A model generated the notes under the pieces. It did no database searches, was not told the DNA's origin, and worked only from the letters and a program-made list of their open reading frames with translations. 64,000 bases of DNA from contig NW_025767157.1 of assembly GCF_003918875.1 (NCBI RefSeq), positions 1,922,001-1,986,000 on the forward strand, read 5' to 3'. Both the position numbers and the translations under genes were made by a program. Every line of letters starts with the position of its first letter. Within the stretch, counting starts at the first letter, position 1. Origin of the DNA: Haliotis rubra (lineage: Eukaryota). This document shows, piece by piece, positions 4,977-59,588 of the stretch.

Positions 4977-7900
4977 TTAAGTGCTGAACTTGTCTTGATG
5001 TAGTAGTGATGACAAATCACAAGACAGTGAAAGGAGTTCAATCAGGAGCTGAGTTCTAACATCATTGTTGAATTGGAACTCCCTACCCTCATTACTGTAA
5101 GACAAGTGAACAACTGATGCCTTTAATTCCTACTTTTATTTATAAGTTATGATGTCAATAGTTCTCCAAAATGTTATGTTTTTAAGACATGAAAGTAAGG
5201 GGCCGTTCATAATTTATGGCCGGGGAGGAAGAGATGAATGGAGAAGCATGTACAAATGAATTAAACCCCCAATTTATGTACAAAGTAAGTGACACCCCCT
5301 GCATGTCACAAAATCAATGACCCCCTCCAATATTTTTAAGCATAATTTTAAATATTATTATGAACAAATTTGCTGACCCCCTAGAAACGAGTACAAAATT
5401 GATGACCCCTACCCCAGAACCTCCCCAGAACACACATGGGTGACACCACCCCCACACACATCATCACCCCCATATAAATTATGAACGGTCCCTAATAACA
5501 GCCAAGACTGTGAACATCTTAGCACAAGGAATAGAAAACAATAACTGAAAGTTGGGGATAACACAACCACATATCTTTTCCAGGATATGTCTATGAAATG
5601 ATGAAGTTCAACAAAAGCTACATGCTCTCTTTGACATTCTCAAATTGTCTCTTTGGTTTGAAGCTATGTAATGTGATATTTAAGTATGAAATGCCTAGTG
5701 GATTTGATTATCACCCCTAAAAGAGTAAATTCAGTTGTAACTTGAATCCTAGGTGTAGGAACACCCTGCCCTGTCAAACTTACTGCACATCCAATACATC
5801 TGTGGTCGATTTCAAGGTCACATCTGCAGCATAGTAAAAGTGGGAGAAGATTTATAGGAAGTAAAACTACAGCTGTGTATGTTTCCAAAACAAAATGGCA
5901 TAATTTCTCAAAGAGAAGGTTGTACACAACTAAGACTTAGGACATAACATAACAATACAGAATTGAAACTTTGCGAAAAGTTCAGGTCTTCTGATTCTAG
6001 TTTTCAGTAGATCAGTGTTGAACTTGTTTCTACAGGAGGCTTGTTTTTGATAAAGTATGTGTCAATGGCCATACAAAATCCAAGAAAGCAAAGGCATAAT
6101 TAGGGAATTTTTCGAACTGGTTTGCAATAAGGGATCATTAACAGTGCTTATCTGTTTACACAACATAATTTACACTGAATGTACTGACTAACCTTGCTCC
6201 TCCAATTCTGTCAGTAAATCTCCATCCTATAGAAGAAATACACATGTGTAAGGCCACAAGTCCTTTCAGATTCTTCAGTTTCTCTTTAGATAAAGATATC
6301 ATAAATCATCAATATTTTTCAAATTTGTAAATGAAAATGAAGAGTTTCTGATATTTTTAACTGAAACATCAACCAGAATGGAAGCTATCTATCCCAAACT
6401 CTACTTTCTTAAATGAATGTCTAGGTTTGACAATTTGCCCTTCCCAGAGATAAATCAGTATTCACGCTTGCATACATTTCGTTATCATTAAAAATAACAA
6501 TATCTAATAAACATTAATAATGAATATGTGAAAGAATGTACCTGGTACCCATGACCATGAAATGTTGAATTAACAATTTGTCGTACATGGATCTGTTGCT
6601 CAGAAAACATAATTTGCATAGATGTTGTAAAGTCCTTGACATGATGCTCCAGCTTTTCTCTGAAAAACTTTTCTGAAAACATAAAGACACACTATCAGAT
6701 TCATCAAATGGAAAACTCCTACAATGATATTGTCGGTTTTCTATGAGAGAAAGTTAAGACAAATGACATATTTGCACACTTCTTCAAACACATCTATCCT
6801 TGATATTCCAGTGTTAAAAATATACAAGGGCATCCTTGAGTCCTCAAGGTTTGCTTCAATACTATATTAATTTCGACGCCCAGAAAAACTAGGACTTTTC
6901 ATGTTATGCTGAGTAAGGACGCCTGACTTTCTTGAGTAATTTCTAAAGAAATTAATATCATAAAATAATGAAAACAATTTTATTATTATGAGAACCTGTG
7001 TGACATTAAGCAATTAGAAGGTGTCAGTTCCTCTGGGAGAGAATGAATATCTTCCCATGGGGAGCCCTAGAAGAAAAAAACACAAAACAATTGTAGAGCA
7101 CTGAATTTGTCAAATGTCATACCAAAGTGATAGAGAAGGTCCTCCACTTCATCCAATCCTTGCATGCTGTCATCTTCATTGTAGCTCCAATCTATGATAG
7201 GCTCAGATGGAGAGTCCTCACAGCTCACATCCTTTGAGACACCTTGAGGATTCTGTCTCCAGGATTTGTCAGAACCATCCTCTTGAAGACAACTACTGTC
7301 ATGGCTAGAGTAGCCTGTATCATTGTCAAGCTCAGCATCACAGGAGGAATTCATAACCTCACTGATTTCTGGAACTTCATGAAGATCAGCTAAAAGAGAT
7401 GACTGTTTCTGAAAATGACATTATTTAAAGCACATTAGACTGAGGGCAAGAATGTATGGATGTCAACTATTTGAGGAACAACATTTCGGAAAATACTCTT
7501 ATTCCTTTATCAAGTGAATATTTGGTGATTAAAACAATGTTTTTATTTTCACAAATTATCAAAAAATATCTGCCGTTGAGTGGTCTCAAAAGACATGGTA
7601 AAAGTGGTAGTCCATAAGGAAAATTCACACTAACCTTTCCTGACTAACAGACTATTTACGACATGATGACTATGTGTATTTTAGGTGTGAAACTTAACAT
7701 GTCATTATCAGAACTTTAATATATATAAAAGGAATACTTACAATAATCACACAAAATTGTCTGGTCATTAAACACAAGATGACACAAGGAAACCGCAAAG
7801 TCTAAATATGTTCTCTATTTCAAGACACTGATAAACACCTGACAATATCATTATCAGGGTCATTTTCAAAATTGGTAGGATTTTCAATTCTTTATTACAG

Positions 7901-13596: not shown

Positions 13597-16500
13597 TGTT
13601 ATTGTAGTAGTAGTAGTATAATATCATTTTGTTTCTATGATCTCTAAATATACCCAAATATTGTGCCCTATGAACTACAAATAGTTTCTTGCTCCAGATT
13701 TCTTTGGCTTTCCTCACTAGCCAAAGTAGGTTATCCTCAGCTTGCATTAAAAGCCCAGCAAATAATGCATGTAATGTAGTAGATGAACCTAAATGCATCC
13801 AGAAAGTCAGTGAAGCATTATGCCTCTGTTACAAAAGTGTATGGTTTTCAAAATTGAATTCATGACAAGTTATTTCTCTTTCACAGATGGGGATGAAAAC
13901 AGGAAGAGCATGGATAGGTAGTAACGTGGAAACATTGCATGTGTAGTATTGAAATAATAAATTCACCTAAACATTTCTCTCTGTTTCAAACCCTGAAAGG
14001 GCGAAACAAGACAATTCAGCATAACATGTAAACAATATATACCAGATGGTAGGCAGAATATGTTTGAATTAGTGTACTTTTTTATAGATAAAACCTTTGT
14101 AGCATTTAGCATAAATCCTCAGCCATAATTTAGATCATTTCACTGTATTTCTTCAAAGGAAATGAGGGGTGATGGGGTAGCCTAGTGGTTAAAGCTTTGG
14201 CTCGTCACGCTGAAGATACAGGTTCGAATCCCCACATGAGTACAATGTGTGAAGCCCATTTCTGGTGTCCCCCGCCGAGATGTTGCTGGAATATTGCTAA
14301 AAGCGGCGTAAAACCAAACTCAGTCAGTCAGTCAAAGGAAATGAGAGTTTTCAGTCAAGACTTGAATGTATTGAAGAAATATGTATGTATAAATAATTAT
14401 TTAAGTGTGTGTCTCATGTTTTGGTATTATACACTTTAATGTTAGTTTTCTTTACATCAGCAATGCTTCATTACAGATGCACATCAACCTGAACAAGCTG
14501 AAATTGTTTTGAATATTTCAAATCAGGTACTGTAGGTGTTGTGCATGGCAAAACTGTTTGAAATAGGATTGTAAATCACACAGAACATTACAAAGACAAA
14601 TGATATCCATCATATTTCAAAATATTGATTTGTTTAACTTTTTAGAGCACATAAATAAGTTTATAGAGACATATTTGGTTCCAGGTTCCCAGCCGATATT
14701 AATTTCCCTATTTATGTTTATATGGTAATAGTGCTTTTACTTTTATTTTGACTGATAACAAGACCAATAAAGAGAAAAAAGCCTCTCTCTCTTTTTTTGT
14801 ATAATTTTTACATCATTGTAGCAGTGCAGTGCTTAAATACAATGTGAAAATTTCTCGGAAACTCCGAAAATAAGAGGTTAAACATAACTGCCATTTCTTA
14901 ATATATCCCCTACATACTCTTAGGAAAAGGGTGTAAAATATCTCTTGCTGGCATGAGGCTACTTGGAAAAACAAGATTCTGAATTGGATTTTTATTATCA
15001 ATGACTCTGTAGCCAAGAGATTCACACACTGGACTACAGATTCAAAGGTCTCATATATTCATTTCCAGAAATATAAAAAAACATGTGTCAGGTGATTTTA
15101 CTTCATTCCAGACATTTAATTATGTGCATTGTGTTCACAGGCACAACAAATATCTGGCAAGAGACATGTACATGTTGCAGTATCAATGGAACGTGTGTAA
15201 AAGAGATCAACATGAGAGTTAACCCAATTTGAGAACATCACTTTTTAAAGATTTAATATCACTGGATGAAATTCAAGTGTTGATCACCATGTGAAAACTT
15301 TCTTCTGTTGATAAAAGTGTGCCCAGAAGCTGCATTCCACTGTAATAGAAAGAAAGAATGAAACTGGTGGGGGAAATGAGGTGATGGAGAGACAGAGGAT
15401 GGAAATAGAAAAGGACATGTTTAAACTGCTGTGCTACAAGGCAGAAGTGGTGAGTGATATAGACTTCAGCGACTGCTACAAGGCAGAAGTGGTGAGTGAT
15501 ATAGACTTCAGCGACTGCTACAAGGCAGAAGTGGTGAGTGATATAGAAGTCAGCAACTGCTGTAAGGCAGAAGTGGTGAGTGATATAGACTTCAGCGACT
15601 GCTACAAGGCAGAAGTGGTGAGTGATATAGACTTCAGCGACTGCTACAAGGCAGAAGTGGTGAGTGATATAGACTTCAGCGACTGCTATAAGGCAGAAGT
15701 GGTGAGTGATATAGACTTCAGCAACTGCTGTAAGGCAGAAGTGGTGAGTGATATAGACTTCAGCGACTGCTATAAGGCAGAAGTGGTGAGTGATATAGAC
15801 TTCAGCGACTGCTGTAAGGCAGAAGTGAGTGATATAGTGATTAAGGCAGAAGTAGTGAGTGATATAGACTTCAGCGACTGCTGTAAGGCAGAAGTGGTGA
15901 GTGATTAAGATTTCGGCAATTTCTGTAAGGCAGAAGTGGTGAGTGATATAGACTTCAGTGACTTTTCACTGTCATCTTTTTCAGTTTATGTAATATTAAT
16001 AAATAGACAAGTATCAATGTGTATAGGAATAGTTTATTATGAAGAAGGATTTATCATTGTGAGGCTTTTATGTATTATGTCAGTGTATAGAAATGAAAGC
16101 TGTTGGTTCTGGAATGGAATGGACGTCTACAAAGTATTTCTATTTTAGGAAATGTTGCAGTGTAGAAATGAAGCAACTGTAAACTTGGTACAGATGGCCA
16201 AACAGATGCTCACAAGATTCCCACGAGAGGTATGTGTGAACAAACATCATGAGCTAATCATTGGGACAGCACAAGCATAAGTTTGGCAGCCTAATTGGGC
16301 CTGCTGTCATTTAACTCAGTTCAATTCACTGTGAAGGTTGGTATCTCTTGACACTGTGATTACAGGCTCAGATCCCAGATTTGTCCTGGCTATGTCTCCA
16401 GTCGGTCAGGATTATACACATGCTAAAATGGTAACCGTATGCATTGCAAATTTGCATTACTCTGAGTCTCCCTCCAGCATGATATCCCCTGTAGTATAAC

Positions 16501-19500
16501 TGGAATATACTCATCTCCCCTCCAGACTGACTGACAGACATGCATGTGCACACGCAGATACACATGCAGATGCACACATAATTATGCACACACTTGTATG
16601 TGCTTATGTGGATCTTTAAAAATTCAATTATATTTGGATGACGACTGGTTAATATCATGTGTTTTGGTCAAAATTTGGTAACACACCACTATGTTGTCTC
16701 ACTAAGTTATGGTACTCTCTACTGCCTAATAACAATATAGTCAGTATACATGTACTATAGGCCTGTGGCCTCTTAAGTGCAAATAAAGACTTAAAACTAT
16801 TTACCCGTGAAGATCCAGATAAGAACTGGTCTTCAGTAACCCATGCTGGTCGTAAGAGGCGACTAACAGGATCTGATAGGCGACTATCAGACTCAATGAC
16901 TTGGTTGACTCATGTCATTGTATCCCAAATGTGTAGATAGATACTCATGCTGTTGATCTCTGGATTGTCTGGTCCAGACTTGATTATTTACAGACCGCCG
17001 CTATATACAGCTGGAATATTGCTGAGTGCAGCATTAAACAACCAGCCAACCAACCGATCTTAAACCTATTTTTTGCATTGTAATGTTTTTATATAAATTA
17101 AGTCAATAAAGTTATGTGTGTCCTGTTGTTGCTAACACAGAGTGGGTTCCTTAGCATGCTGTGTTACAACTTTGGAGTAGACCTGTATCAGAAGAAGAGG
17201 CACAATGAAGCCATCCACTGGCTCCGAGAAAGTTTTGATCTCAGCAAAGAAAGGAAAGGAGTTATGCCTAGAAACCAGGTACTTTTTGTGCTACAGGCCT
17301 ACCTTTGCCTATGAATGCTTTATTCGGTTAAGGGACCACCAGCACATTATGCAAATTGCAGCATTGCATAATAACATACAAGACAGTGTCACAAATATTG
17401 GGCATTGCTTTATTCAAGGGAAGATAGTTTGGTTTTGGGGTGTGTTTTTCATTCACTCAGTACCATACTAATCTTCACTAATGTTAGGAATTTGGTGCAC
17501 TTTTTAGTGGTAAGGAAACTAGACTTACCTAAACATTTTGTGTTGTGAACATATGCTGAAGTTAACAGTTTCATTTTTAATAAATTTTGCTTCCTGCAGG
17601 TTTTTCCCAAAACAATTGGTAGAATATGTTCTGAGATATTTTGATAAAAAGGACAGATTAGACAGGAGTTACATTTGTACAAGTCTTCTTAGCATTTGCC
17701 TGAATAATTATTTCATATAGACAAATTATTAAAATGTGAAATGTTCTCACCAAAAGGATATTTTGTGTTGATTGTTTTGCTTGAGGTGAGTGCCTAATTC
17801 ACAAAACTCTTTCCACAAATTAATAGAATGCTAACAATGCTAGTAACCCCTGATTTCCAGCTTTGTTCAAACAAAATCATCACATGAACAGATTGCACAT
17901 GGACCTAACATTACAAAGCCCCAAATATTGTCTTGAAGACTATCTGATTTTAAGATGCTGGAAACAGAGTGATGGATATCATTTATATTAACTTTTTTTC
18001 TATATATAAGTGAAAAAACATCAATGCAAACCCAACAAGATATTTATTTTGATTAATTCCATTCCAGGCAAGAACTCTAAGACTCTTGGCAAATGCCTAC
18101 ATTGAGAGTAACCCCTCAGAACACTTTGAGAAGGCCTTGAATGCAGTGTCCCTGGCAAACACAGTCAGTATTTCTTCATTTTGTGTATACCTTTCGAATA
18201 TGTTGTGATAAAAGGTAATCAGATTATCCTGTTACCTGATCCTAGTTTTACCAATTACATAATCGTCAGTTACATGTTTTGTTTATACATTTTGTTGGGC
18301 AAAAGACAGAATACACCCATGTTTGGTCATGGTTACAGTTATACAAATAGTAGTTGTTTGATTGTGATGTATGGGATATAGGTGTCATAGCTGTGCTTTT
18401 GACCTTACATTTGCAGTGCTTCAGTAACTGGAGTGTTTGTAATTATTTGGTCAAATCCAATTTTCAGTGTATTCTTTTTTCGCCAAACCATTCTGTTATT
18501 TTATCAGCTTGCTGAAAAACATATTGTCACATAGTAAAATAATAGGGATGTCATGATACATAAGTTTCATGAATCGATACGTATCACGATACCCATGTCA
18601 CCATTCGATACGTATCACGATACCTATTTTTGTGGCATTATTGCGTAAATTTTGTTACATTTTGAACATTGACATTTCATATTTTATAATTGTCCATGAA
18701 GAGATCAACATTTTTGATTCTCAGAGATTAAAAAGTTTTAATTTCTCATCTTTGTGCACCTCACATGGGTACAATGTGTGAAGCTCATTTCTGGTGTCCC
18801 CTGATGTTGCTGGAATATTGCTAAAAGCGGCGTAAAACCAAACTCAGTCAGTCATCTTTGTGCAAAAAATATACAGTTTGCACGTGTTATCTGGCTGATG
18901 TTGTTTTCTAATGTTGAATACATATATGTGAGGCTTACAGGAGCACTGCCACCCTGCCGGTCTCTACCTGAAGCTCAGAGTACTGCTGATAGGAGGAGAG
19001 AAGGGGGCACCTGTCTCTGCAGGTGAGGCACAAACATTCACTTGTGTATTGTTCTTAGGTTCTTAGTGTTACTGGCTTCCCTGTTTATCCAGTGAATCAT
19101 AGTTCCATTCACCTTTTCCCCAATACCTTTGTTTTGAAGCTTGAGGTACATATTCTGTATCACTGGCTTCAATTGCTTGTTGGCTTGAAATCAACAACCT
19201 ATCAAAATGTGATCTTCTAATGCCAGCCAAAGTCAACATATGAAAATTCAATTCAGCCCCATGAGAGCTCAACATTTAAACCACAACATGTTTATCTCTT
19301 TGCTTAGTTTGGTGAACGTATTAAGGCTCTCAGGCTTGTAATAATTTCTATCTCTCCTTGTTGAGTGTAGAACAAATTTAGACTCCGGCTGTAGTCTGTT
19401 TATCTGCAGATGGTATGTTTATCTAACAATGATCTTTGAGTGGTATTTAGAAGTTTGATATGTGATTCATGACAATGTAGAATGATGATCAACTTCATAT

Positions 19501-22500
19501 AACAATTGTAGTCAGACTTCCTTGTCAGACCTGACACCGGACATTGTAGTAACAATGTGTATCATACATACAATCTTGCACTAGCTAATTGCCCACTTTC
19601 TGTTTATCTCCATATTGTGGTATCAGTTATGACTAACAAGGAGAAAGTGAAATCTGAGATTAAAAATGCAGATTGTATTGGAAAAGATATATGTAATCAA
19701 ATCATACAGAAATTCCAATCACAGAGATTTCCTAAATTCATAGAAATTCATATGAAGCTAGGGCAGCATGCAGGATGAGTTAGTGAGCATGCATACATAC
19801 ATACTTGGTCATTTCATTATGTGGGTTTCTTGAGCAACCAGCAATATTCCAGCAACATGAGGGCAACCTGGAAATAATTGGGTGAGGACCAGACAATCTG
19901 GTGATTGAAGCTGTGATTAACAATCCATGCTGTCAAGATATAAAGATACCTCATTTAGCAAGCCAACAAGTCGGACCAGTCTGTGAAGTTGCCTGTTACA
20001 AGTGGCATAGGTTCTGAGGGACCTAACCTAAATTGGAACCCTTACTGGTTCCCAGAATAGTCGTCTCTTACCACAAGACAGGTCCCTTAGAGTTACTCAC
20101 AGAGGTACTCGGAATATCATAATGTCATTAGGTTCATCACCAAAACTGCATTATCAAACACATCAAACTTCTACAAATGTAACAATTACACACAAAGGTT
20201 TCAAAATTGTGAATGAGTGGTTTTGAAATTATACATTTTCAGGTACATGTTCTATCCCAATGAACAAAGTAAATACTTGTACAATCTGCAAACTCTTTTT
20301 CAGTTTTGGATGACATCATTAAGCACTCAGATTGCACCCTAGAGCTAGGACTGAGCGTATTACAGCTGTTAAAGCAGTACAAATGGTAACAATTATTGTT
20401 TGTCCAAATTTTCCATTTCAACGATGTTTGATTTAAGTCAATAAATTGTACTGTTATCACACTCCTCTCCTAGACCAGACAAAAGCAGTGTTTGATGGTA
20501 TGAGCAACCATCCATATTTTGAAGGCATAGAGAGCACAATCAGACTTGTCACAATTTGTAAACCCAGACCAATCCCTCTTTGTTTGGTCAGGGTCAGTGA
20601 ACACATCTCACAATTTTAGAGCAATCAGTGTTTGAATCCCATAAAACACATCCACACATGTTTCTGAATATCATGACCTGAGACATCTCACCTGAAATGC
20701 TTTATATCAATGTTTATTACAGTTTTGATAACTGTATGGACTTTCCATCCAAGTTGAGGAAAAGGTTTGAGCAGTGTCCCGATGTTGGTCGGCTCTTCAT
20801 AACCCAGCTCCAGGCCTTGCTGGAGAGTGACCAGTCCCAGCAGGCAAAGCTTTTCTCTGAAGAATGCATCACAGGTACCTGTTTGTGTATGTATGTTGTA
20901 TAACACTGTATTTAGCAATATTCCAGCTGTAAAGGTGGCTGTATTTAAATGGGTTAGGACCAGATAATCCCATGATTGATATGAGCAATGATTTTGATAT
21001 GGTGACTACTGTTACCGGTAATATAGTGACTGAGTCTTCTAACCATCATAGGGGGCGGTGAGGTAGTCTAGTGGTTAAAGCGTTGGCTCATCCGCCGAAG
21101 ACCCGGGTTTGAATCCCCACATGGGTACAAATAGTGAAGCCCATTTCTGGTGTCCCCTGCCGTGATATTGCTGGAATATTGCTAAAAGTGGTGTAAAACC
21201 AAACTCAGTCAGTCAGTCTAACCATCGTAGGACATAGTACTCCTACTGTAGTGTGTCTACCAGCATGGACAGTTATACTTGTTTAATATAGTATTTTGCT
21301 ACTGAGGTATGAACATGAAAATCTGATATCCATAGCAAAAGGCATTAATCTTGACTATTTAGGCGATTTCACTGGAGCAATAACTGCCAGGATTATATAG
21401 TTTCACTAGTGCTGGTTATCACTCACAATATGTAGATCGATGATACAAGCTCGCTAATAGATCAATAATCGATTGTAAATAGTAAACCCCACCCCAAACT
21501 CATGTGGGCAATAACAGGACACAATCATAACATTTTGCATTAGTTGTTCATGTCTTGATTTAACAAACATAACAATAAGAAACATGCTTTCTAAAGTTTA
21601 ATTTCATGTTTCATGAGTAATATTCATTAAATACATATTGTCACGTGAATTCTTACTCCACTTTCTAATAGCATATTACCTTTGCTATTATTAAGAGAAT
21701 GAAGATTCTATTCTTAAAGTCAATATTTGATGTCCAAAAAATGGTACCATCGGCAGCAGAAAGACATCAAAATAATTTATCACTGAAAATTAAAAGTCTC
21801 TTTTATGCTGCTTGCTTCCCTGTCACACCAGAAATAACATCATGGATGCGGATATTAATTTTAATTACATTTTTGACAGTCAGACTGACATACATAATTA
21901 ACAATGTATTTTTCTCACATATTTTAATGGCTATAATGTACAACTGGAATTCATTAAACATACAATTTAAAGTTACCCACATTTTAATTATGCCTTCAAT
22001 CTTATTCTAATGCAGGTTTTAAAAATGCTCCAACCTACTGTGCTCTGCTGTGTTTTTGCAGAGGTGTTTCAGTGTGTGCCCACGTCTTGTTACTTAGGAA
22101 TATGTAGTACTTCTCTTCCCTGTTTCTGTGTCTAGCTCACAACACAGGAAGGCCACTGGACATAAACACAAGGAAGCAGTTCCACTTGGTGTTTTGGGAG
22201 AAGGCTGGAGCTGCTTTTGAGGTAAAGATTGTATATTTGAGCTCTAGAACAAATCACATCTGATTGTATAACTAGTGTTATGTTGTATTTCAACATAGAT
22301 ATTTGTGCATACACATCGCCTCCTTAATAGTCTTCAAAACCTACCTTTGATGATTAATAATGAAGAAAAACAGACCACAAGAACTGACTTCATTCAGCTC
22401 AATAGTATATTCTGTCTGAACTTCACTTCACTGAGACCATCAGCATGTTCTGTCAAAACAAGACTTCACGGAAACCGACAGTATATTCTGTCTAACAAGA

Positions 22501-31500: not shown

Positions 31501-34500
31501 CAGTTTTTTGCAAATTGTATGTATATACCTATTTACCTTGTACCTGCTGTAGGTCTAAGAGCCAATACTTCACAGATGTGGTTCGTTATGAACATGTCAT
31601 GTCAATAGTCATTTTGCATAATAGTTATCACATACAATGTAAGGTATTCATTGTATTCAAACTCTTGTGAAGTTATATGTACAACATGTTTAATTAACTT
31701 CTATTGACAAACATAACACTTGTTTATCATTGTTTATGATAACAACTGTTCACATTTCCTTTACAGTAGGGCAGTGGGATAGCCTAGTGGTTAAAGCATT
31801 CACTTGTCATGTTAAGGTCATGGGTTCGATTCCTTTCAGGAGTATGCATGTATCCAATTTCTGGTGTCCCCACACTGTGATATTGCTGGAATATTGCTAA
31901 AAGTAACCTAAAACCATAAACTCATCTACTTATCTTTTATAATGATTGTTTATTGATCAGAGAGATGCACTGGAGGAAGCCCTGTGCTACATTGAAGAAT
32001 TCCAGTTGCTCCAGAGGGATCAGAAGAGTGTTACATGGACACAGATAGGTATCATTCACCCACACTTCAAGCACAGTAGTTTAGGGGTGTATTACACTAC
32101 ACAGACTGACACCTATACTAGGTAGGAGTAATTAATTACCATCAACAATGGGAATTATGCCTAAACCAAAACGATGCAATATTAATGGGTCTAATCCACA
32201 GGGGTGGTAGGGGAGTCTACTAGCTTAAGTGCATGCCTTACAACCTTGGTTCAATTTCCCACATGGATGCAATGTGTGAAGCCCGTTTTCACTCCCATTT
32301 TAGTGATATTACAGGTATATTGCTAAAAGCTGCATGAAACTTCACTCAAGGAGATACACTTTTTAAAACAATCTAAAATTTGCAATTCATAAACAGAAAG
32401 CTAACTAAATTATTTTGTGATATGTTTTAGAAAACTAACTTTTTACCCAATCGAAATTGTTTTGTATGTGACACTGTATATAGGGATGGCTGAAAGAGGC
32501 CCATATAAAGGACACTATACATTATAAAGTAACAAAACTTGTATGCCTCTCAGAATGCTTGTGATGACCAAGTATCATACTATGTAATTTATTTTGACAG
32601 AAGACACAAAAGGTCCTGATACCACCGACATGCTGCTATTGCTGTATGAGTTTGAAGCCCGTGTTAAGTTACAAGACAATGGGGCTGAAGCATTGCTGGA
32701 GAAAGCTCTTACCTTACCTCAACCGGAACCAAAGACTTTTGAGGCTTTTGCAGGTTTTAGTTTTAATAAATCTACGTTCATTTCAAAAACAGAAAGGTCA
32801 GGAATCTGCATCAGTTGTTTATGTGGTGATGTAACAAACATAACAATAAGAAACACATGTTCTAAAATTGAATTTGATATTTATATTTTCGATTATTCTC
32901 CTGAACCCATTGATGCTGACACAAGCGAAATCCAGTGTCCAGTTGTCTTCAACAATAGCTGTTGTCTGTTCCAGGGGTGGTGGGGTAGTCAGCTTAAGTG
33001 TTCAATTGCCTTCTATGACCAACAGTCAAATTCCTACATGGATGTGTGAAGCCCATTTTCACTCCCATTTTAGTGATATTACAGGAATATTGCTAAAAGC
33101 TGCACAAAACTTTGCTCTTACTTACTCATTCATTCACTCACCAACCTACACACTCACTCACTTGCTCTCTACGTTCCAGCCCTCGCTGTGGAGCCACCTG
33201 CCTGTGACAGAGGTTTGAGTATCCGGGCACTCAAGGTGGCGATCAGAACACACCTGCAGGTGGACCAACCTGACTTCCACAGATGCAGGTGGGCAACGCT
33301 ACTAGATTCTGTAATCATTGAACTGCATGGGTGAATAATCTGAAATACAACATGTGTATGTCTGTGGACTGCAAGTCATTTTATGATTGAAAGACTCAGA
33401 AAGAGATGTTAACAGTTGACACAGCCATGATATATGACAGCTGTTGATTTCGTTGTCAGAAGTACTAAGGTTGTAGTTTAAGTGTAAGGTGGGGTATGAG
33501 GTCCATAACATGTGTTACTGGGATGTGGTTTAGAAAAACAAATGTGACAGTTGAGTGTTGGTCAGGGTACTATTTAAATAACTGCATACATAGGGAACCG
33601 TGTACAGATGATCTGTATCATGACTATTCGAATAAAATTTGTGTTTGTTTCATAAACCCTTTTCACGTTGTGTATGTTTCTTCAGCAAGGCCATACACAG
33701 CCTGATCCAGCTGTCGCTGAGCACAGGCCAGTCCAGCAGTAAACAGGAGACGTACAACTACTTCAAGGAGACAATAGATGTCATTGATAAAAAGGCAAAG
33801 GTACATATATTCCTCATTGGGCTGCCCAAACTGAACACAGTTGCTGCTCCATCCTCATTTATCCTGAGTATTATTATTCAACCAATGAAGATCCTGGTTA
33901 GAAAAGGTCTTCAGACACCCATGCTTGTCGTAAGAGGCGACTAATGGGATTGGGTGGTCAAGCTTGCTGACTTGGTTCATTGTATCCCCCTTGCAAAAAG
34001 TGATGCTCATGATGTCGATCACTGGATTGTCTGATCCAGACTTGATTATTTACAGCCATCATATAGCTGAAAGATTGCTGAGTGTTGCATGAAACAAAAA
34101 ACTAAAAACATCAATACCTATATATACTGAGTCAAAATAAAAACTTAGACAGTTTTTGGATATCATAATATTAATCCCCTAGTATCGACTCATCACAGCA
34201 CATTGAAGTCAAACCAAACATCGTGCACCCCACAATAGTGCTAAAACGTGTTTTTCACGCGCTACTGGTCACGTGATCTTATCATTGCACGTGCATTCGA
34301 TCACACATGTTCCCCATCAACTGCACAAAGTGCAAAAAACACTTTAAAGCACTAACAAGAACAGCCAATTCTTATGCCGCGCCTCTCAAATGTGCAGCAG
34401 TAAATGGGGTGCAGCCGTCAGACTGTGATTTACAGACACAACTGCAACAAACTGGCACCACTGCTGATTGCCCTAGGCCAGGTCAACCACGTGCGACGTC

Positions 34501-36464
34501 ACTCGCGGAGGACCGTCAAATTGCGTTACGTCACCTCCACAATTGTTTTTGACGGCTACAGAAACTAGAAATGAGCTGTTTAGGGGTCGATTGTCTGCAC
34601 AAACCATCCAAAACTGGCTGCGAGCTGCTCTCCCTTCGTGTTCGACGACCGTAAAGCGGAACCATTTTGACGTCAGCGTTTGCTCAGGGCCCGACAACAC
34701 CTCCGATGGACTCAGAGAGACTAGAATGGAGTTGTCTTCAGTGATGAATGAAGATTTACCCTCAAATTCACTGATGTTAGGATGAGAGTGTGGAACAATC
34801 TCACTGACTCACTAATAATGTGTTTACACGTATCAGATAGTCCATGAGGTGGTGTTGCTTGGCAGTTGTAAAAGCACGGCGAGGCCATACATGCTACTGA
34901 ACATTTGAAACATTAGATTTAGTTTCTTGTGACTTGTTTACGCTTTTATTGATAAATTCTGTAAGCATATGGAACCGATTTTTGGCATTGTTATTATTCT
35001 CAGTTCATCCTATCAACCTTAACAAATAAATGATAACCTCTATACCACATTCTTGTGTCCTTTCTTTTATATATTATTTATATATGATTGTGAAGTTTCT
35101 AGTTTGACTCCGTCATGTGTTCCTGGCATGCCCAGCCATGCATTTGTTTGGAGATTTCTGGTGCCTATAACAACCGAGTCCCCCATGCCCCCAATGCCTC
35201 AATACCTGTAATGATATAACATTTCTGTAAATTCAGGGACATTATCCTGAACTGGAGATTGTTTGGTTGATGACAAGGGCATGGAACTGTGGCATCCAAT
35301 TCTACAGGTAATAGTTGGACATGTGTACATAGACAAGACGTAAAGGCATGGTACTAACACAGGATACAGCGTTGATATGTTGTATTTCAAAACTTCCCTG
35401 AATTAACAAATTGGTTTATGCTATTAAACCCAATCATCTTGCAAGAGGCACAAGTCAAAATATAATATTTATAAATAACATTTCTTATGTTGTTTGGGTA
35501 AAGGAATACTTCCTAAAAACAAGCTGTGAAATGTATCTTTACGTAATTATTTTGTAAAATATGTTATATTTTCAATCAGTCAGCATGTACATTTTGCATA
35601 ATTTTTAAAAAAATTACTCTGCAAATATATGGATATGCTCATTTTTAAAAAAGAACAAAAATTGTTTGGTTTCGAAGTGAAAGAAAATAAGTACTCTTTC
35701 TTTGTTTCGTAATTATCTCCACACTGATCAATGTCCAAATATCAAGTGTGTTGTGTTAAGCATCACATTTTACATTTTACCCCAAGTTCCACAGAGTACG
35801 ATGAGGCAGAGAGATGGTGCAGTATGAGTATGGGACTCCTCAAGTACTTGACAACCATGAGGCCCAACTACGAGGATCAGGTAATCAATAAACACTAGCA
35901 TTCACTGCGGGAAGATCCATGTGGACAGTGTGTCATCTTACAGTGATCATGTGAAGTGTTTCACAAAGTCAACTAGATTTAATTTTTTTATCATGCCACA
36001 AAGATATTGATCTGTTATAAGAAATGAAGGATACTTTATGAATGACAACGTCTTTATTATATTATGATATGACGTTTTGTTGTAGATTCTCATACCATTG
36101 TCACACTCTTGTTTGACAAGAGTTACTTTACTGTTTGTCTGAAACTGTCCCTGCATATTCCTTATTCAGTCATCATTTTGAGGTTAAGTAAAAAATTTGA
36201 TAACTCAAAATTATTTACATTTGTCCTTTCAACTTCGACACACCTGTGATTGACTGTAGATATAGGTATCATAATTGTTTGCTGTGTTTCAGTGAAGTCA
36301 TGTTTCGATAATATCGGTAATTTGAGGGTCACATCCAGTTCCCACTGTATACTTCTTTCCCTCGGCAGTGGATATCAATAACGCTGTTGTAGATGAACTC
36401 AGTGTATGGCGAGATACTGGACAGGATAGAACAAGCCCGAGGTCAGCCATCAATGGAGGAGTAG
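11682..36464 (+). CDS. TEX11: Testis-expressed protein 11 (ZIP4/SPO22 meiotic TPR protein), 29 coding exons, ~920 aa
   Basis: Exons: 11682-11715, 12015-12151, 12613-12697, 13174-13253, 13887-13917, 14477-14526, 15318-15449, 16149-16229, 17141-17278, 18068-18163, 18941-19022, 20304-20385, 20723-20874, 22136-22221, 23277-23417, 24830-24932, 26815-26921, 27139-27275, 27827-27864, 28891-28971, 29202-29272, 30051-30167, 31961-32048, 32601-32753, 33180-33288, 33686-33800, 35237-35307, 35787-35880, 36393-36464. All are GT-AG and phase-compatible. Motifs match vertebrate TEX11: SLWNHAV, LCYNFGV, ALNAVSLAN, ALTWYNYSL, KLQRNRASC, EAMWFMKIAWNLAL, KTCTLMAVA, LLLLYEFEARVKL, YPELEIVWLMTRAWNCG, AERWCS. AATAAA at 36703. 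Confidence 0.95.
11767..11922 (+). mobile_element. SINE family A
   Basis: tRNA-like A/B box head and shared GCCCATTTCTGG...GCTGGAAT tail. Confidence 0.8.
13562..13618. repeat. (TAG)n microsatellite
   Basis: Run of tagtagtag; explains the poly-Tyr ORF. Confidence 0.95.
14166..14333 (+). mobile_element. SINE family A, young full-length copy
   Basis: Intact A box (TAGCCTAGTGG) and B box (GGTTCGAATCC), (CAGT)n tail, TSD TCAAAGGAAATGAG. Confidence 0.9.
15432..15962 (+). repeat. 42-bp minisatellite (~13 units) spanning the TEX11 exon 7/intron 7 boundary
   Basis: Unit TGCTACAAGGCAGAAGTG|GTGAGTGATATAGACTTCAGCGAC; GTGAGT donors at 15450, 15492, 15534, 15576, 15618, 15660, 15702, 15744, 15786, 15825, 15855, 15897, 15939. 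Confidence 0.95.
16803..17055 (+). mobile_element. SINE-like family B
   Basis: ACCCGTGAAGATCC...CCATGCT-GTCGTAAGAGGCGACTAAC...GCTGGAATATTGCTGAGTGC-GC-TTAAAC(AACC)n; further copies at 24435-24670, 33885-34105 and 46997-47657. Confidence 0.8.
18757..18853 (+). mobile_element. 5'-truncated SINE family A
   Basis: 3' half of family A flanked by TSD TCATCTTTGTGCA. Confidence 0.8.
21051..21217 (+). mobile_element. SINE family A, full length
   Basis: A/B boxes, (CAGT)n tail, near-perfect TSD TCTAACCATC(A/G)TAGG. Confidence 0.9.
23473..23579. mobile_element. Short TIR element (MITE); related copy at 53487-53619
   Basis: CATAGGTGGATCC...GCTGTATCCGCCCCTG; the inverse-oriented relative at 53487 shares CAGGGGCGGATACAGCTTTT and CACACTTCATTTTCAC. 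Confidence 0.6.
24435..24670 (-). mobile_element. SINE-like family B, young copy
   Basis: Reverse copy with 13-bp TSD TACAGTAATTATA (24422-24434 and 24671-24683). Confidence 0.85.
25150..26400 (-). mobile_element. Degenerate 5'-truncated LINE (L1/Tx1-like ORF2 3' end), antisense in TEX11 intron 16
   Basis: Frameshifted ORFs GGLGMINIFEYVKALKVTWMRKL, NPFWIDC, FLEYYGVISSI, DTKLRWFQYRIFHRILTTNTFLKK, C-S-F-C, FWS..SW and LFILLGKYYLYKCK, typical of the post-RT/zf-RVT region. Confidence 0.85.
26609..26770 (-). mobile_element. SINE family A
   Basis: (GTGA)n tail followed by the reverse family-A body. Confidence 0.8.
31768..31925 (+). mobile_element. SINE family A (older copies also at ~28695-28850, 32200-32350, 32975-33140)
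   Basis: GGGCAGTGGGATAGCCTAGTGGTTAAAG...GGTTCGATTCC...GCTGGAATATTGCTAAAAG. Confidence 0.75.
33885..34105 (+). mobile_element. SINE-like family B
   Basis: CCATGCTTGTCGTAAGAGGCGACTAA core and shared tail. Confidence 0.8.
34123..35075 (+). mobile_element. Tc1-like transposon relic
   Basis: Broken transposase fragments QQTGTTADCPRPGQPRATSLAEDRQI, GRLSAQTIQNWL and VVFSDE; begins after TATA with TACTGAGTCAAAA; right end degenerate. Confidence 0.7.
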
Positions 36465-37140
36465 AACACTGACTACAATCGGTCACTGGACAAGCTGATC
36501 TCTACAACAGTTGGTGCTAAGCAGACCAGCTTGATAAATGACTGGCTGATATATTCCTTTTTGTCTTCCTTGACAGTATTCAGTGTTTGTGTTGAGATAA
36601 AACATATCATTGACTAAAGCTTGTTTTCTATTTTAGAACCATTTCGATGAATGCACTGGACTGGGTCTGGTGATATTTGTATTCAGTTAAATTAGATTGA
36701 ACAATAAACAGCAGCATTCATATCATTTTTCAGCAGAATGATTGTGTATGAGATTACTCTATTCATGGTATAAAATGGTGGAGTAAATATCTCTTTCAAA
36801 TGTACCTGAGCAACCCTATGGTTTTTAGGCTGTCAGGTTTTCATTGAAACATGTTTGGCAAGATGAAAAAGTAAGGTAATGACTGGCCTGAGAACTATTG
36901 TGGTGAGGTGAAAAACAATCCATATTCATTCACCTTTTCCCTTAATTGTTAAGTCCATTATCATCTGACACGTGGAAAAATACATTATAAAGAAGGTCAT
37001 CTGGGATGGGAGAATGTGTTGATGGGTCCATGGAGAGTATCTATTATACTGAGTGTCGTGGCTGTCAGAAGAAAAGAGTTGGGTTGTATGCTGCTTTGAC
37101 CAGTATTCCAGTGTGTCAAGCAGGTCTTGGATGTTTACCA

Positions 37141-37411
37141 CACAGGCTTGGAACGCTAAAAACTGCCATCAAGGTATATACTGTCACTGACAGGGTCTTA
37201 GTACCACAGGGGCTTGTAACGCTAAAAACTGCCATCAAGGTATATACTGTCACTGACAGGATCTTAGTACTATATAGTACTTCCTATTTTATATAGTACT
37301 AAGACCCCATCAGTGACAGTACCATATAGTACTTCCTTCTATATAGTACTAAGACCCCATCAGTGACAGTATATACCTTGATGGCAGTTTTTAGCGTTAC
37401 AAGCCCCTGTG
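37141..37411. mobile_element. Foldback MITE with internally duplicated arms
   Basis: ~75-bp inverted arms (37203-37277 vs 37339-37413), an extra tandem copy of the left arm at 37141-37203, and 8-bp TSD GTTTACCA. Confidence 0.7.
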
Positions 37412-37588
37412 GTTTACCACTTCCATGAAACAAACAAGCACAGGTATGGTACTGACAAACCCAGAAACATAAACAGGGGAAACTCAGATCAAACCCATTG
37501 TCACATGTTCCTGGCGTGCCAAGGGATGCAACTCTGTTCGTTGATTTGCAGTACCGAAAACGACTGAGCCTCCTAAACTAGTTCATGT

Positions 37589-37736
37589 CAGTGAGTGAGT
37601 TCAGTTTTATGCCTTTTTTAGCAATATGACGGCAGGAGACACCAGAAATAGGCTTCACACGCTGTGCCCATGTGGGGAATTGAACCCAGGTCTTCGGTGT
37701 GACGAGCAAATGCCTTTACCACTAGGCTACCCCCCA
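37589..37736 (-). mobile_element. SINE family A
   Basis: Reverse family-A sequence with GTGAGTGAGT tail. Confidence 0.8.
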
Positions 37737-38211
37737 TGTCAGAGATGATACATGTTGAACTACGCATCAAAACTGATGCTGTTAATTGTTGTGTTTGCTC
37801 CATATCTGTTGCTGTATTCCTTATAGAGCCAATTGTCAGTGTAGTGTAGGGGTGTCATGATTAATCAAATTATCAATGCATTTGTCCCCAGCTTGGTGTC
37901 TAATCATCCAAGAATGTCTACATTGTACTCATCTTGCTACTGCAATACTGGTTCAACCATCAAAATATTATCTGTAGTGTTCTGAACCATTGCAATACTA
38001 ATGAAAATATTTATCATGCACCTTTTTCTAGACATAAAGATCACAATATGATCATATTACCCCAGATAACCCAAGCTGCCCCTTAGGCGCTATAAGGTTA
38101 ATAGTCTCATGACTTATTTCACCGGGTACCCATTTTCTGATGGGTGAACTGGGGCAATTTTGAACAAACTCACTTGCCTAAGGTGAGACCACAGGTATCA
38201 CATGTGCCTCT

Positions 38212-38975
38212 TTATGTAAAAGAGTGAAATATCAACACAGAAATCTCTAAACTAAACAAAAGTATCTATCACAGATCAACAAATTGGCAAATGCCTCTAA
38301 AGTGGCTTCATATAACAACGCACCATTCACAACCGGTGCATACAAATACTACCCAAAACTGAAGTCCTAGAAACTTTCAGTAGTCAAGCTGCCAAACACG
38401 GTCATCCATCCAAGGACTCTTTGCGCCCAACGCTGCTTAACTTCATCTGATTTGTGACCTGAGTGCTATGCACAGGACCACCACAATAGTATTTAATATA
38501 TAATACTATTGTTGTAATACACCTGAGCCTATAGTATTTACTATATAATACTATTGTTGTAATACACCTGAGCCTATAGTATTTACTATATAATACTATT
38601 GTTGTAATACACCTGGGCCTATAGTATTTACTATATAAAACTATTGTTGTAACACACCTGAGCCTATAGTATCCATAATACAATGGACAACAAGCAATAA
38701 CAAGACATGAAATGGGAGGTGGTGATGTTTCATGATATGATGGAATGAAAAGGAACCACAAAGACAAAAATATAAGAGATAACTACTTACGGTTGAACAC
38801 ATTTATACACATTCATAGGCATATAACAATTATGTAAAAAAGTGAAATATCAACACAAAAACTCTAAACTAAACAAAAAATATCATGTATCACAGATCAA
38901 CAAATTGGCAAATGCCTCTAAAGTGGCTTCATATAACACCATTCACAACCGGTGCATTCAAATACTACCAAAACT
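38212..38975. repeat. ~145-bp direct duplication (38212-38360 and 38830-38975) flanking a 4x45-bp tandem repeat (38486-38672)
   Basis: GTGAAATATCAACACA...GGCAAATGCCTCTAAAGTGGCTTCATATAACA...CCATTCACAACCGGTGCAT occurs twice; unit ATAGTATTTACTATATAATACTATTGTTGTAATACACCTGAGCCT lies between the copies. Confidence 0.85.
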
Positions 38976-39282
38976 TGCTATTGGTGGTACTTTCATGTTA
39001 GTATTCCAATAATGTTCAGAAGTATCACAGAAATTCAGTACTCCATTTCGTTCCATGACGCATACTGGACGGACTTCGTTACATTGACAAGTCACATCCA
39101 GATATCTAGAGTGTATAGAAATCATAAATAAATACTATAAACAGATGTAATTTGCCCATGTCATAACTTACACAAAATCCCTGAAATCATCAAACAGACA
39201 TGTTTAAAAAAAAAAATGCTGACAGGACTAGCTATCCTTTGATTAGACAAGTCATCCTGCAAACACAAAATGACTTGAGAGA

Positions 39283-39445
39283 CAGATTGTTCCAACAGTG
39301 TTGATTCAACAAAACTGATTGTTCCAGCGGTGTGAATCCAACAATACTCATTGTTCCAACTGTGTCAGTCCAACAATACTGATTGTTTAAACGGTGTTGA
39401 TGCAACATTACTGATTGTTCCAACTGTGTCAATCCAACACTACAA
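39283..39445. repeat. Degenerate 33-bp tandem repeat (~5 units)
   Basis: CTGATTGTTCCAAC-GTGT-----CAACA-TA recurring with a period of about 33. Confidence 0.75.
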
Positions 39446-39520
39446 ATGCCTTCAAATATATCATGGTAGAGACTCCATGAATTGTTTGACACAAATTTCC
39501 TCCCTTAATAAGTCCCTGAC

Positions 39521-42500
39521 TCATGAGGATGATGTGAGGAAGACATTTCTGCCAGCATGCATATAGTTTGGCCAGAGTGAACTGAGAGCCTTCGCCTCCT
39601 GCAAGAAAACAGTTAAGGATGACAGTGGAACTCTTGATCAGACTTTGCGTTAATTGGGTATTTATTAACATAAATAATAATATCTAGATTTATCAAGAGC
39701 TGCCCAGAGTCTGATAAATGACAGTTAAGATTACCAGTTCAAATGAAAAAATATTCCCATGTAAAAACAAAATTCAAAGAAAATAGAAAAGAAAAATTCC
39801 AAATTTTCCTGACATTTTCCCAGTTTACCTTCTAAGGGTATTTAGTTTCGAATCCTAAATCAATCCCTGATAGTATTGGGATGTAAATTAGCTGGCATGC
39901 TTGTATACTCACAACAATCCTGCTTTTATCACGGACTTCTTCCATAGTAAGTGGGAGAGGTTTTGGTGGTTCATACACAACAAGCTGATGCTCCGCTTTC
40001 TTCTCTCTGTAAAGATTTTTATTTTCATTGAAGAAATGGTGTTCCTTCCTTTCTAGATGGTGAATAAAACTCCACAAGGTCATTACACAGTTACTCTTCA
40101 CATGCTACACACAGCTCATTCAGTTGTTACACATTCAATAAAAAAAGAGTCGCATCACAGTCAACAATATTTCAGCAATAATGTGATGGCCTGAATCTGA
40201 GCCAGGCAGAACTATACACTGAATGCATAAGCAATGATCTATGTAGTCTGGGTAGCATGACATGCATTCAGCCAGGCGCCTGATTCCCATGTAATCAGCT
40301 CGTGACAAGCAAGAGGTACAGCAAATTCTCATCATGTATGAAAATGGGAGCAGAGTTGTGTCCGTTGGGCATGACAGAAATCTATTATAGGTTTGAATCC
40401 TGGTTTGCCTCTATTATATTTCTAGGTTTGTCTGTACCAACTCATGCTTGTGGGTTTCAGCAAAACATGGTATGACTAGAATGCTGCATTAACCAAACTG
40501 CACTCACTCATAATATGGGACACAAGATTTAAGTAGGTTTAAACACAAATATAACACTGTAAAACGATACTATTTGTAACAATACAACTTTCACTTTCTG
40601 GATTTTGTTCCACACTGACATATTCCCACACAACAGTCATCGTAGCTGCCCAATAACCATTTCAGTCTGGCGATCAATATACGGTTAACATATCTGTCTT
40701 GGAGAAATCGTGGAGGTTCAACAATCTGGTACTCACTGTCTGGGTGTTGTTGAAACAGAACTCCCTCTGCTATGTGTGCTGTGCTCGGCCATCATGGCCA
40801 CCTTGGTCATTGTCGGCACACCCTCCCTCTCTGATTCACGACCAGAGATAGGTGGGAGGCGCTGGCTGGCAGGGGGTAGGGACGGGGCAGCTTCATGAGT
40901 CTCCCAGTAATAATCTGATATCTGAGCAAATAAAGCATATCATAGCATGACATGACGGACACAGATGGAGTAACATGTATAAGTATAACATCCACACATC
41001 CTTATCATCTTTGAATACATTGGTTGTGAAATATTTTGAAAAATGAGCATGAAATGGGAAGGAGTCAATGCCACATTCAAGAATATTTCACTTCCATAGC
41101 GATGTGCATGTGTAAGTCTGGCAGCTTGTACTATTCAGGACTATTCCCCTTTATCCTTTGGTATGATGTGACCAGGGGATCACGCCACCAATCTTCTTCA
41201 GACAGGTGCTCTATGCACTACACTGAAGGCAGGTGTTCTGTGCACTACACTGAAGGCAGGTGCTCTATGCACTACACTGAAGGCAGGTGTTCTGTGCACT
41301 ACACTGAAGGCAGGTGCTCTATGCACTACACTGAAGGCAGGTGTTCTATGCACTACACTGAAGGCAGGTGTTCTATGCACTACACTGAAGGCAGGTGTTC
41401 TATGCACTACACTGAAGGCAGGTACTCTATGCACTACACTGAAGGCAGGTGTTCTGTGCACTACACTGAAGACAGGTGCTCTATGCACTACACTGAAGAC
41501 AGGTGTTCTGTGCACTACACTGAAGGCAGGTGTTCTGTGCACTACACTGAAGGCAGGTGTTCTATGCACTACACTGAAGGCAGGTGTTCTATACACTACA
41601 CTGAAGGCAGGTGTTCTGTGCACTACACTGAAGGCAGGTACTCTATGCACTACACTGAAGGCAGGTGTTCTGTGCACTACACTGAAAGCAGGTGTTCTAT
41701 GCACTACACTGAAGGCAGGTGTTCTGTGCACTACACTGAAGGCAGGTGTTCTGTGCACTACACTGAAGGCAGGTGTTCTATGCACTACACTGAAGGCAGG
41801 TACTCTATGCACTACACTGAAGGCAGGTGTTCTGTGCACTACACTGAAGGCAGGTGTTCTATGCACTACACTGAAGGCAGGTGTTCTATGCACTACACTG
41901 AAGGCAGGTGTTCTGTGCACTACACTGAAGGCAGGTGTTCTATGCACTACACTGAAGGCAGGTGTTCTATGCACTACACTGAAGGCAGGTGTTCTGTGCA
42001 CTACACTGAAGGCAGGTACTCTATGCACTACACTGAAGGCAGGTGTTCTGTGCACTACACTGAAGGCAGGTGCTCTATGCACTACACTGAAGGCAGGTGC
42101 TCTATGCACTACACTGAAGACAGGTGCTCTGTGCACTACACTGAAGACAGGTGTTCTGTGCACTACACTGAAGGCAGGTGTTCTGTGCACCACACTGAAG
42201 GCAGGTGTTCTATGCACTACACTGAAGGCAGGTGTTCTATGCACTACACTGAAGGCAGGTGTTCTATGCACTACACTGAAGGCAGGTACTCTATGCACTA
42301 CACTGAAGGCAGGTGTTCTGTGCACTACACTGAAGACAGATGCTCTATGCACTACACTGAAGACAGGTGTTCTGTGCACTACACTGAAGGCAGGTGTTCT
42401 GTGCACTACACTGAAGGCAGGTGTTCTATGCACTACACTGAAGGCAGGTGTTCTATGCACTACACTGAAGGCAGGTACTCTATGCACTACACTGAAGGCA

Positions 42501-59260: not shown

Positions 59261-59588
59261 TGATGAATCCGACAGTGTAGCCTGTTTTCAATGCATCCAC
59301 GAATGATTCTCTCACAGATTTCATGTAGCCTCGGTCGATGCGGTGCGTGTTTTGTGTCCCGTCTTCATTGAGAGGGAGTCCTAAGTTAAGGACCCGATGC
59401 ATGGATGTACCCTAAACGCCGTGAGTACCCAGAGACCATCATGGAACTCGCCATGACAGCGTTAGAAGAAGAGGTCGGGAGCCCCGCGGTCTGTTAGAGA
59501 GAGAGAGACAGTGAACGAGGCCCCCTCTCTTTACAACCGCTTGACTAGCAGTTTATTATTGCGTTTACGGAGTACACTATCAGCAGAA

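Follow-up and report, generated by a model that had tools for sequence, protein, structure and literature searches.

A minisatellite spanning the exon 7/intron 7 junction of abalone TEX11 reiterates its splice donor and is probably removed whole with the intron

Tandem repeats that straddle a splice donor have been described in several human genes and in amphioxus. In intron 7 of human F7, a 37-bp unit is present in 5-9 copies, and, of the identical donors, splicing uses the most upstream alone; experiments with 50 minigene constructs showed that the downstream pseudo-sites can work but come into use only if those preceding them are destroyed (PMC1557585). Only the authentic donor is likewise used in human LMNB2 (100 bp, 10-15 copies) and in intron 4 of PDGFA (81 bp, 16-18 copies), while intron 2 of human IFI6 (6-16) and intron 13 of CBS carry 25 and 15-20 reiterated donors, respectively, and the two nearest pseudo-sites are used as well (PMC1557585). 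In amphioxus, the 'mirages' of Adh3 and of the globins BflGb6 and BflGb9 are minisatellite-like tandem duplications of exon-intron boundaries; they show haplotype length instability and concerted evolution within the array from which the edge units are excluded, regular splicing is undisturbed, and a route to intron gain has been proposed from them (PMC3087553). The length of an intronic variable number tandem repeat (VNTR) in human ABCA7 is reported to be linked to splicing changes (PMC5954066). Here we describe an array of this kind in the blacklip abalone, Haliotis rubra, in a stretch of 64,000 nt (NCBI RefSeq assembly GCF_003918875.1, contig NW_025767157.1, positions 1,922,001 to 1,986,000 of the forward strand), which we call the window and in whose coordinates all H. 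rubra positions are given. The array lies at the junction of exon 7 and intron 7 of TEX11, and we consider it likely that it is a tolerated intronic minisatellite that spans the junction and is spliced out whole from the first donor.

TEX11, or ZIP4, has a role in class I crossovers. The H. rubra RefSeq protein (XP_046583412.1, 920 aa) maps exactly to the plus strand of the window, in 29 coding exons from 11682 to 36464. In this mapping, exon 7 (15318-15449, 132 nt, phase 0 to 0) ends in the residues CYKAEV, three quarters of the 699-nt intron 7 (15450-16148) consist of the array, and exon 8 (16149-16229, 81 nt, phase 0 to 0) stands directly before the part of the protein that matches SPO22. 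Tandem Repeats Finder (TRF) reports a single tandem array on the plus strand at 15432-15963, with a period of 42 nt, 13.0 copies, 87% matches and a score of 798; the consensus unit is found nine times in the stretch with at most three mismatches, versus no occurrence in 100 shuffles, and the window is free of N. Each unit combines 18 exonic nucleotides, which code for CYKAEV, with 24 intronic nucleotides of TEX11, and the first monomer includes the true boundary, such that the authentic donor itself is reiterated. This donor, GTG/GTGAGT (15450-15455, plus strand; the slash marks the splice site), forms the junction of the RefSeq model and matches MAG/GURAGU at seven of nine positions.

Behind it, 12 plus-strand pseudo-donors occupy 15492-15944. 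GTGAGT thus occurs 13 times: at 15450, at eight more sites spaced every 42 nt (15492, 15534, 15576, 15618, 15660, 15702, 15744 and 15786), and then at 15825, 15855, 15897 and 15939. The context GTG/GTGAGT is identical in 11 of the 13, that is, ten of the 12 pseudo-donors share the 9-nt context of donor 1, the exceptions being 15825 (GAA/) and 15855 (GTA/), both with A at position -1. Counted from the start of the exon at 15318, every one of the 13 donors falls in phase 0. The spacing is irregular in just two places, where it is 39 nt (-3) and 30 nt (-12) and still divisible by three, and from these values a shortened unit of 27 nt (42 - 3 - 12 nt) can be placed at 15816-15842 on the plus strand. 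Frame 0 stays open between 15315 and 15905, after which an in-frame plus-strand TAA in unit 12 (15906-15908) terminates the read-through frame; splicing at one of donors 2-12 would therefore lengthen the protein by 14 to 149 residues with no stop, and donor 13 is situated beyond the stop. In structure, the array is a junction-spanning minisatellite of the 'mirage' or F7 intervening sequence 7 (F7-IVS7) type.

An earlier note, made from the letters of this DNA, had placed the starts of exons 7 and 8 at 15318 and 16149, exactly where the mapped protein has them. Its account of an amplified exon end and donor, of 13 GTGAGT and of length variants that keep the frame was correct throughout as judged by TRF, donor positions and frame, as was its statement that donors 2-12 are stop-free and that donor 13 lies past an in-frame TAA. 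It had further remarked on a likeness to the tandem-duplication route to splice-site and intron gain; tandem duplication is supported, as the unit is the duplicated exon 7/intron 7 junction, at an intron position that is old.

The same junction was compared in three other abalones and in an outgroup gastropod. H. rufescens carries 2.5 perfectly identical copies of a 44-nt unit with GTGGGT donors. In H. cracherodii, 83.5 copies extend over 3.65 kb of a 3.9-kb intron; of 83 units, 70 are 44 nt long, 11 are 42 nt and two are 45 nt, and 47 of the donors are identical to the authentic GTG/GTGGGT. H. asinina retains a decayed remnant, in which the first unit is followed by a degenerate second one lacking a donor, then by ~290 nt of inserted sequence, and finally by a terminal GTGAGT unit. 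The terminal unit and the 3' flank behind it are orthologous to the last unit of H. rubra and the corresponding flank. The insertion that splits this remnant (~5690-5985 in H. asinina) has no clear terminal inverted repeats on a quick check. The outgroup Gigantopelta aegis has an intron at the same codon boundary, with a single donor, GTT/GTTAGT, and no repeat. The breakpoints of the unit agree between the two Haliotis clades except for a TG within a TGTG run, and the unit that is 2 nt shorter is also present, as a minority, in H. cracherodii. From the shared breakpoints and the orthologous terminal unit and flank, it follows that the junction duplication predates the common ancestor of the four sampled species.

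Each lineage has since gone its own way, with the array expanding, contracting and becoming homogenised independently of the others. The earlier note had proposed genotyping the VNTR across related species, and the 13, 2.5 and 83.5 copies, together with the decayed remnant, reveal a copy number that is unstable between species: H. rufescens and H. cracherodii differ 33-fold at a synonymous divergence (dS) of 0.058, with dS between the clades at 0.42-0.50. Certain letters are common to all units of a clade, the authentic first unit included (GTGAGT/GACTTC in H. rubra and H. asinina, GTGGGT/GTCTTC in H. rufescens and H. cracherodii), and this sharing indicates concerted evolution. TEX11 itself is intact, and dN/dS is 0.10-0.13 in every Haliotis pair, a sign of purifying selection. 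Among the Haliotis arrays compared, the frame-keeping array is peculiar to H. rubra, the sister clade having a unit of 44 nt.

Several lines of evidence bear on which donor is used. The RefSeq TEX11 proteins of H. rubra, H. rufescens, H. cracherodii and H. asinina all read CYKAEV/EMLQCRNEA, which corresponds to splicing at the first donor, and each maps exactly to its own genome in 29 exons, with exon 7 ending at that donor. The two H. rufescens isoforms, which differ at residue 56, share this reading; H. rubra has a single protein, and no isoform with an insert is present among the RefSeq TEX11 proteins of the four species. In the alignment, the motif FKLLCYKAE followed by V, I or A is conserved in TEX11 of bivalves (unionid and oyster), gastropods, an octopus and an annelid, and no aligned bivalve, gastropod, cephalopod or annelid TEX11 has an insert after it. 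When a hypothetical model spliced at donor 2 is added to the alignment, every other TEX11 protein in it shows a gap of 14 residues. Because this evidence consists of gene models and homology, it speaks for a conserved product and not for the absence of minor isoforms. No relative of the 196-aa read-through open reading frame (ORF) among proteins of 108-343 aa was found in a collection of 5.8 billion proteins, and a query with residues 130-280 of H. rubra TEX11 found no Haliotis protein fragments. Sub-threshold Pfam matches of the read-through ORF to PcF and Galaxin come from its cysteine-rich repeat and were rejected as chance.

Of these results, the comparison among species is the most informative. 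The first seven pseudo-donors of H. cracherodii were translated, and every one leads to premature stops; the remaining ones must do so as well because the first stop lies in unit 2. TEX11 is intact despite 47 perfect pseudo-donors that break the frame, and on this ground we would argue that the downstream donors are essentially unused in Haliotis.

The course of events can be set out as follows. The final ~18-20 nt of exon 7 together with the first 24 nt of intron 7 were tandemly duplicated before the four species split, and lineage-specific change later produced the 13 copies of H. rubra (unit of 42 nt), the 2.5 copies of H. rufescens and 83.5 of H. cracherodii (unit of 44 nt), and the decayed remnant in H. 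asinina. The spliceosome would take the most upstream donor, between 15449 and 15450, and the array would leave with intron 7. The pseudo-donors would be essentially silent, as gene models, the ortholog alignment, the tolerated frame-breaking arrays of the sister clade and the F7 precedent all suggest. The array would then be a near-neutral by-product of a minisatellite-rich genome rather than a device that tunes isoforms, and the frame-keeping unit of H. rubra is most likely the chance result of a 2-nt loss in the TGTG run.

Some observations weigh against this view. We infer the silence of the pseudo-donors, and the RefSeq models, being predictions, could have been guided by homology to orthologs. 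Splicing in human IFI6 and CBS does make use of the two closest pseudo-sites (PMC1557585), ten pseudo-donors here have the same 9-nt context as donor 1, and an exon extended to any of donors 2-4 would measure only 174-258 nt. Both length variants of H. rubra keep the frame, for which the chance is about one in nine. Furthermore, the intronic part of the unit differs between the clades at three of 24 sites, versus about 7.9 expected from dS (P ~0.02). Such low divergence could mean some constraint, or homogenisation with the functional first unit could explain it. As for read data, run searches turned up none recorded as RNA that contains the stretch, and three runs guessed to be RNA (X4-X6) match only a high-copy repeat at ~16700-17105 when compared with 15000-17400, and no TEX11 exon.

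The open frame of the array is in itself probably without meaning. Of the 126 single substitutions that the unit could undergo, just five create a stop, and with 10 substitutions in total across units 1-9 the probability that none arises is 0.67. The first 24 nt are open in 22 of the 28 TEX11 introns, and a run of eight codons within the introns of this gene is open in 60% of cases. One unit length in three would be divisible by three by chance. Selection to keep the frame open was rejected as unnecessary. The variants among units comprise four replacement types (Y/C, D/N, DF/EV) versus one silent type (TAC/TAT), and this variation looks neutral, as would be expected without constraint. Nor is there any unusual RNA folding of the array that might mask the pseudo-donors: z is -1.32, and 24 of 200 shuffles fold as well.

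The alternative that fares best is a leaky, minority use of donors 2 and 3 (15492 and 15534), after the manner of IFI6 and CBS, giving TEX11 with 14 or 28 additional residues before the SPO22 region. Such transcripts would escape nonsense-mediated decay because the H. rubra unit is 42 nt long. Donors 2-9 have the 9-nt context of donor 1 and are in frame, the read-through frame stays open to 15905, both length variants preserve it, and there is the human precedent of two used pseudo-sites. We nevertheless regard leaky splicing as unlikely, given a single, insert-free H. rubra RefSeq protein and no insert isoform in four species, neutral-looking variation with four replacement types to one silent, and no protein resembling the read-through ORF in the 5.8-billion-protein collection; moreover, the in-frame ladder is not conserved, since the units of the sister clade break the frame. 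A more specific form of the idea is that the loss of 2 nt (from 44 to 42) in the H. rubra lineage made the pseudo-donors frame-keeping, and that leaky donors 2 and 3 give decay-resistant isoforms unique to this species, with 14 or 28 extra residues next to SPO22 and in a share that shifts with array length; this we hold to be more doubtful still. The earlier note had gone further, in proposing that copy number could set the isoform spectrum and the functional dose of TEX11. That claim is unsupported: the models of four species use the first donor, no ortholog has the insert, and the sister arrays break the frame.

It is less probable again that the array acts as a cis element, in which a row of intronic U1 small nuclear ribonucleoprotein sites alters splicing efficiency or mRNA level according to copy number while the pseudo-donors remain unspliced. 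The intronic part of the unit is indeed more alike between the clades than dS predicts (3/24, P ~0.02), the array has persisted across a dS of 0.42-0.50, and the ABCA7 repeat is reported as an example of an intronic VNTR whose length is linked to splicing changes. However, the array ranges from a decayed remnant through 2.5 to 83.5 copies with no visible effect on the integrity of the gene, the unit may owe its conservation just to being homogenised with the functional first unit, and the RNA structure is not unusual (z = -1.32). A second array in the same gene also argues against a cis role: intron 14 holds a purely intronic, donor-free 38-nt array of 2.5 copies in H. rubra (22400-22495 in the window), 19 in H. 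rufescens (20821-21539 in that locus) and 12.9 in H. cracherodii (17851-18342 in that locus). Since this donor-free array is equally persistent, persistence is not special to the array of donors.

Minisatellites are in fact plentiful in the surroundings, with seven separate arrays of at least four copies in the 64 kb of the window. A very large one, which lies at 41203-44506, past the end of TEX11 and before the Frizzled gene, has 122 copies of 27 nt (94% matches, score 5658) and is open in two plus-strand frames over more than 600 codons; others between the two genes lie at 49281-50091 (34 nt, 24 copies), 52425-52878 (61/129 nt) and 53043-53485 (49 nt, 9 copies). The TEX11 introns of the other Haliotis species carry many more arrays, up to 20 kb in H. 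rufescens, where a 55-nt array of 238 copies spans 13 kb within one TEX11 intron (31965-45080 of that locus) and arrays make up ~40% of the 51-kb gene, as against ~2.5% in H. rubra. H. cracherodii also has a second, young junction duplication (32783-32972 of its locus) that takes in the last ~17 nt of exon 28 and a GTAATC donor; its 82-nt unit is repeated 2.3 times, and it is absent from H. rubra. Of ~15 independent arrays in TEX11 of the four species, two cover a donor, a sample too small to test for an excess over chance. The TEX11 array is therefore an instance of a common feature of abalone genomes and is not tied to meiosis. A transposon origin of the 42-nt unit was rejected because its exonic part encodes the conserved CYKAEV of TEX11 itself.

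Intron 8 contains a dispersed repeat of very high copy number (~16700-17105), whose summed word depth reaches millions in sequencing run X1. ORFs that look like this repeat occur near 11763, 14173, 18805, 24453, 26621, 31800, 32195, 37599, 46250 and 46629. A tRNA origin was considered for it and dropped, as ARAGORN found nothing.

Run X1, which behaves as whole-genome DNA (contigs totalling 1.48 Gb, word depth ~15), also provides an independent view of the array. Contigs from this run are 96-97% identical to the window over the two flanks and break off at the edges of the array. Summed word depth is 23-252 for array words versus 14-16 for the flanks, and the array is thus multi-copy in an independent read set, with exact copy number and within-species variation not readable from these 31-mer contigs. 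X1 and the window are ~3-4% different over 15000-17400, with a 25-nt insertion after 15268 and substitutions in exon 7 at 15359, 15371 and 15398, which points to a divergent haplotype or individual. An assembly artefact, of the array itself or of its length, in the Nanopore-hybrid H. rubra genome is very improbable: although the X1 contigs break at both array edges and leave copy number unconfirmed, word depth in this independent run is 3-17 times higher for the array than for the flanks, and three further Haliotis genomes, each assembled independently, have orthologous arrays at that junction.

The identification of the gene as TEX11 (ZIP4), already made in the earlier note, is borne out by the exact match to the H. 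rubra RefSeq protein, by SPO22 matches and by collinear alignment of mollusc TEX11. The Pfam SPO22 profile (PF08631, gathering score 27.5) matches the exon 9 ORF at 17102-17311 with an E value of 1.7e-8 and 34.7 bits (profile positions 32-69), and the exon 10 ORF at 18053-18205 with 8e-6 and 25.9 bits, slightly under the gathering score (profile positions 81-121); Pfam gave nothing on exons 7 and 8 alone. A HMMER search with a single exon returned mollusc and annelid proteins named TEX11 or ZIP4 homolog. By tblastn, proteins named TEX11 from molluscs, annelids and one vertebrate align collinearly over 12.6-35.9 kb of the window, in 9-26 ordered segments per query (18 for Potamilus), and the best-matching protein among the Haliotis TEX11 is that of H. 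rubra itself. The window is 100% identical to contig QXJH01000047.1 of GCA_003918875.1 over the 1901 nt compared. TEX11 is flanked by the forkhead-domain first exon of a FoxO-like gene on the minus strand (1176-1583; Pfam E value 1.4e-13) and by a single-exon Frizzled gene on the plus strand (59466-61304; Fz and Frizzled domains, 3e-125).

We believe that the locus is best regarded as a natural experiment on the choice of a 5' splice site, with 1 to 47 identical extra donors in sister species and with lineages that contrast in whether the extra donors keep or break the frame. Its relevance lies in whether the 'first donor wins' rule, known from human F7 minigenes, holds in molluscs and over an array of 3.6 kb. 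TEX11 biology itself is probably unchanged by the array. If leaky isoforms did exist in H. rubra, they would offer a natural, species-specific test of a junction minisatellite that creates protein sequence in a crossover gene. For genome annotation there is a warning here, in that abalone introns often contain pseudo-donors that are perfect and stand in arrays.

Among the systems described at the outset, F7 is the closest in architecture. In both genes the first monomer lies across the exon 7/intron 7 boundary and identical pseudo-donors follow the authentic donor; the donor is of the GUG/GUGGGU type, and F7 copy number is polymorphic. The F7 unit, in contrast, has only four exonic nucleotides and breaks the frame, whereas the abalone unit has 18; donor choice in F7 is known from minigenes and in abalone is predicted from gene models and ortholog alignment; and the abalone array is genus-wide, with a 33-fold range of copy number. 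LMNB2 and PDGFA differ in having longer units and in being vertebrate genes. IFI6 and CBS share the junction-spanning arrays of reiterated donors and supply the precedent for the isoform idea, but their two nearest pseudo-sites are used, whereas use of the TEX11 pseudo-donors is only hypothetical. The amphioxus 'mirages' resemble the abalone array as invertebrate boundary duplications with length instability and concerted evolution; they belong to another phylum, and some copy the acceptor side, whereas the abalone arrays can be traced through four species. The class of junction-spanning minisatellites is thus already known from human and amphioxus, and the abalone TEX11 array is a further case of it.

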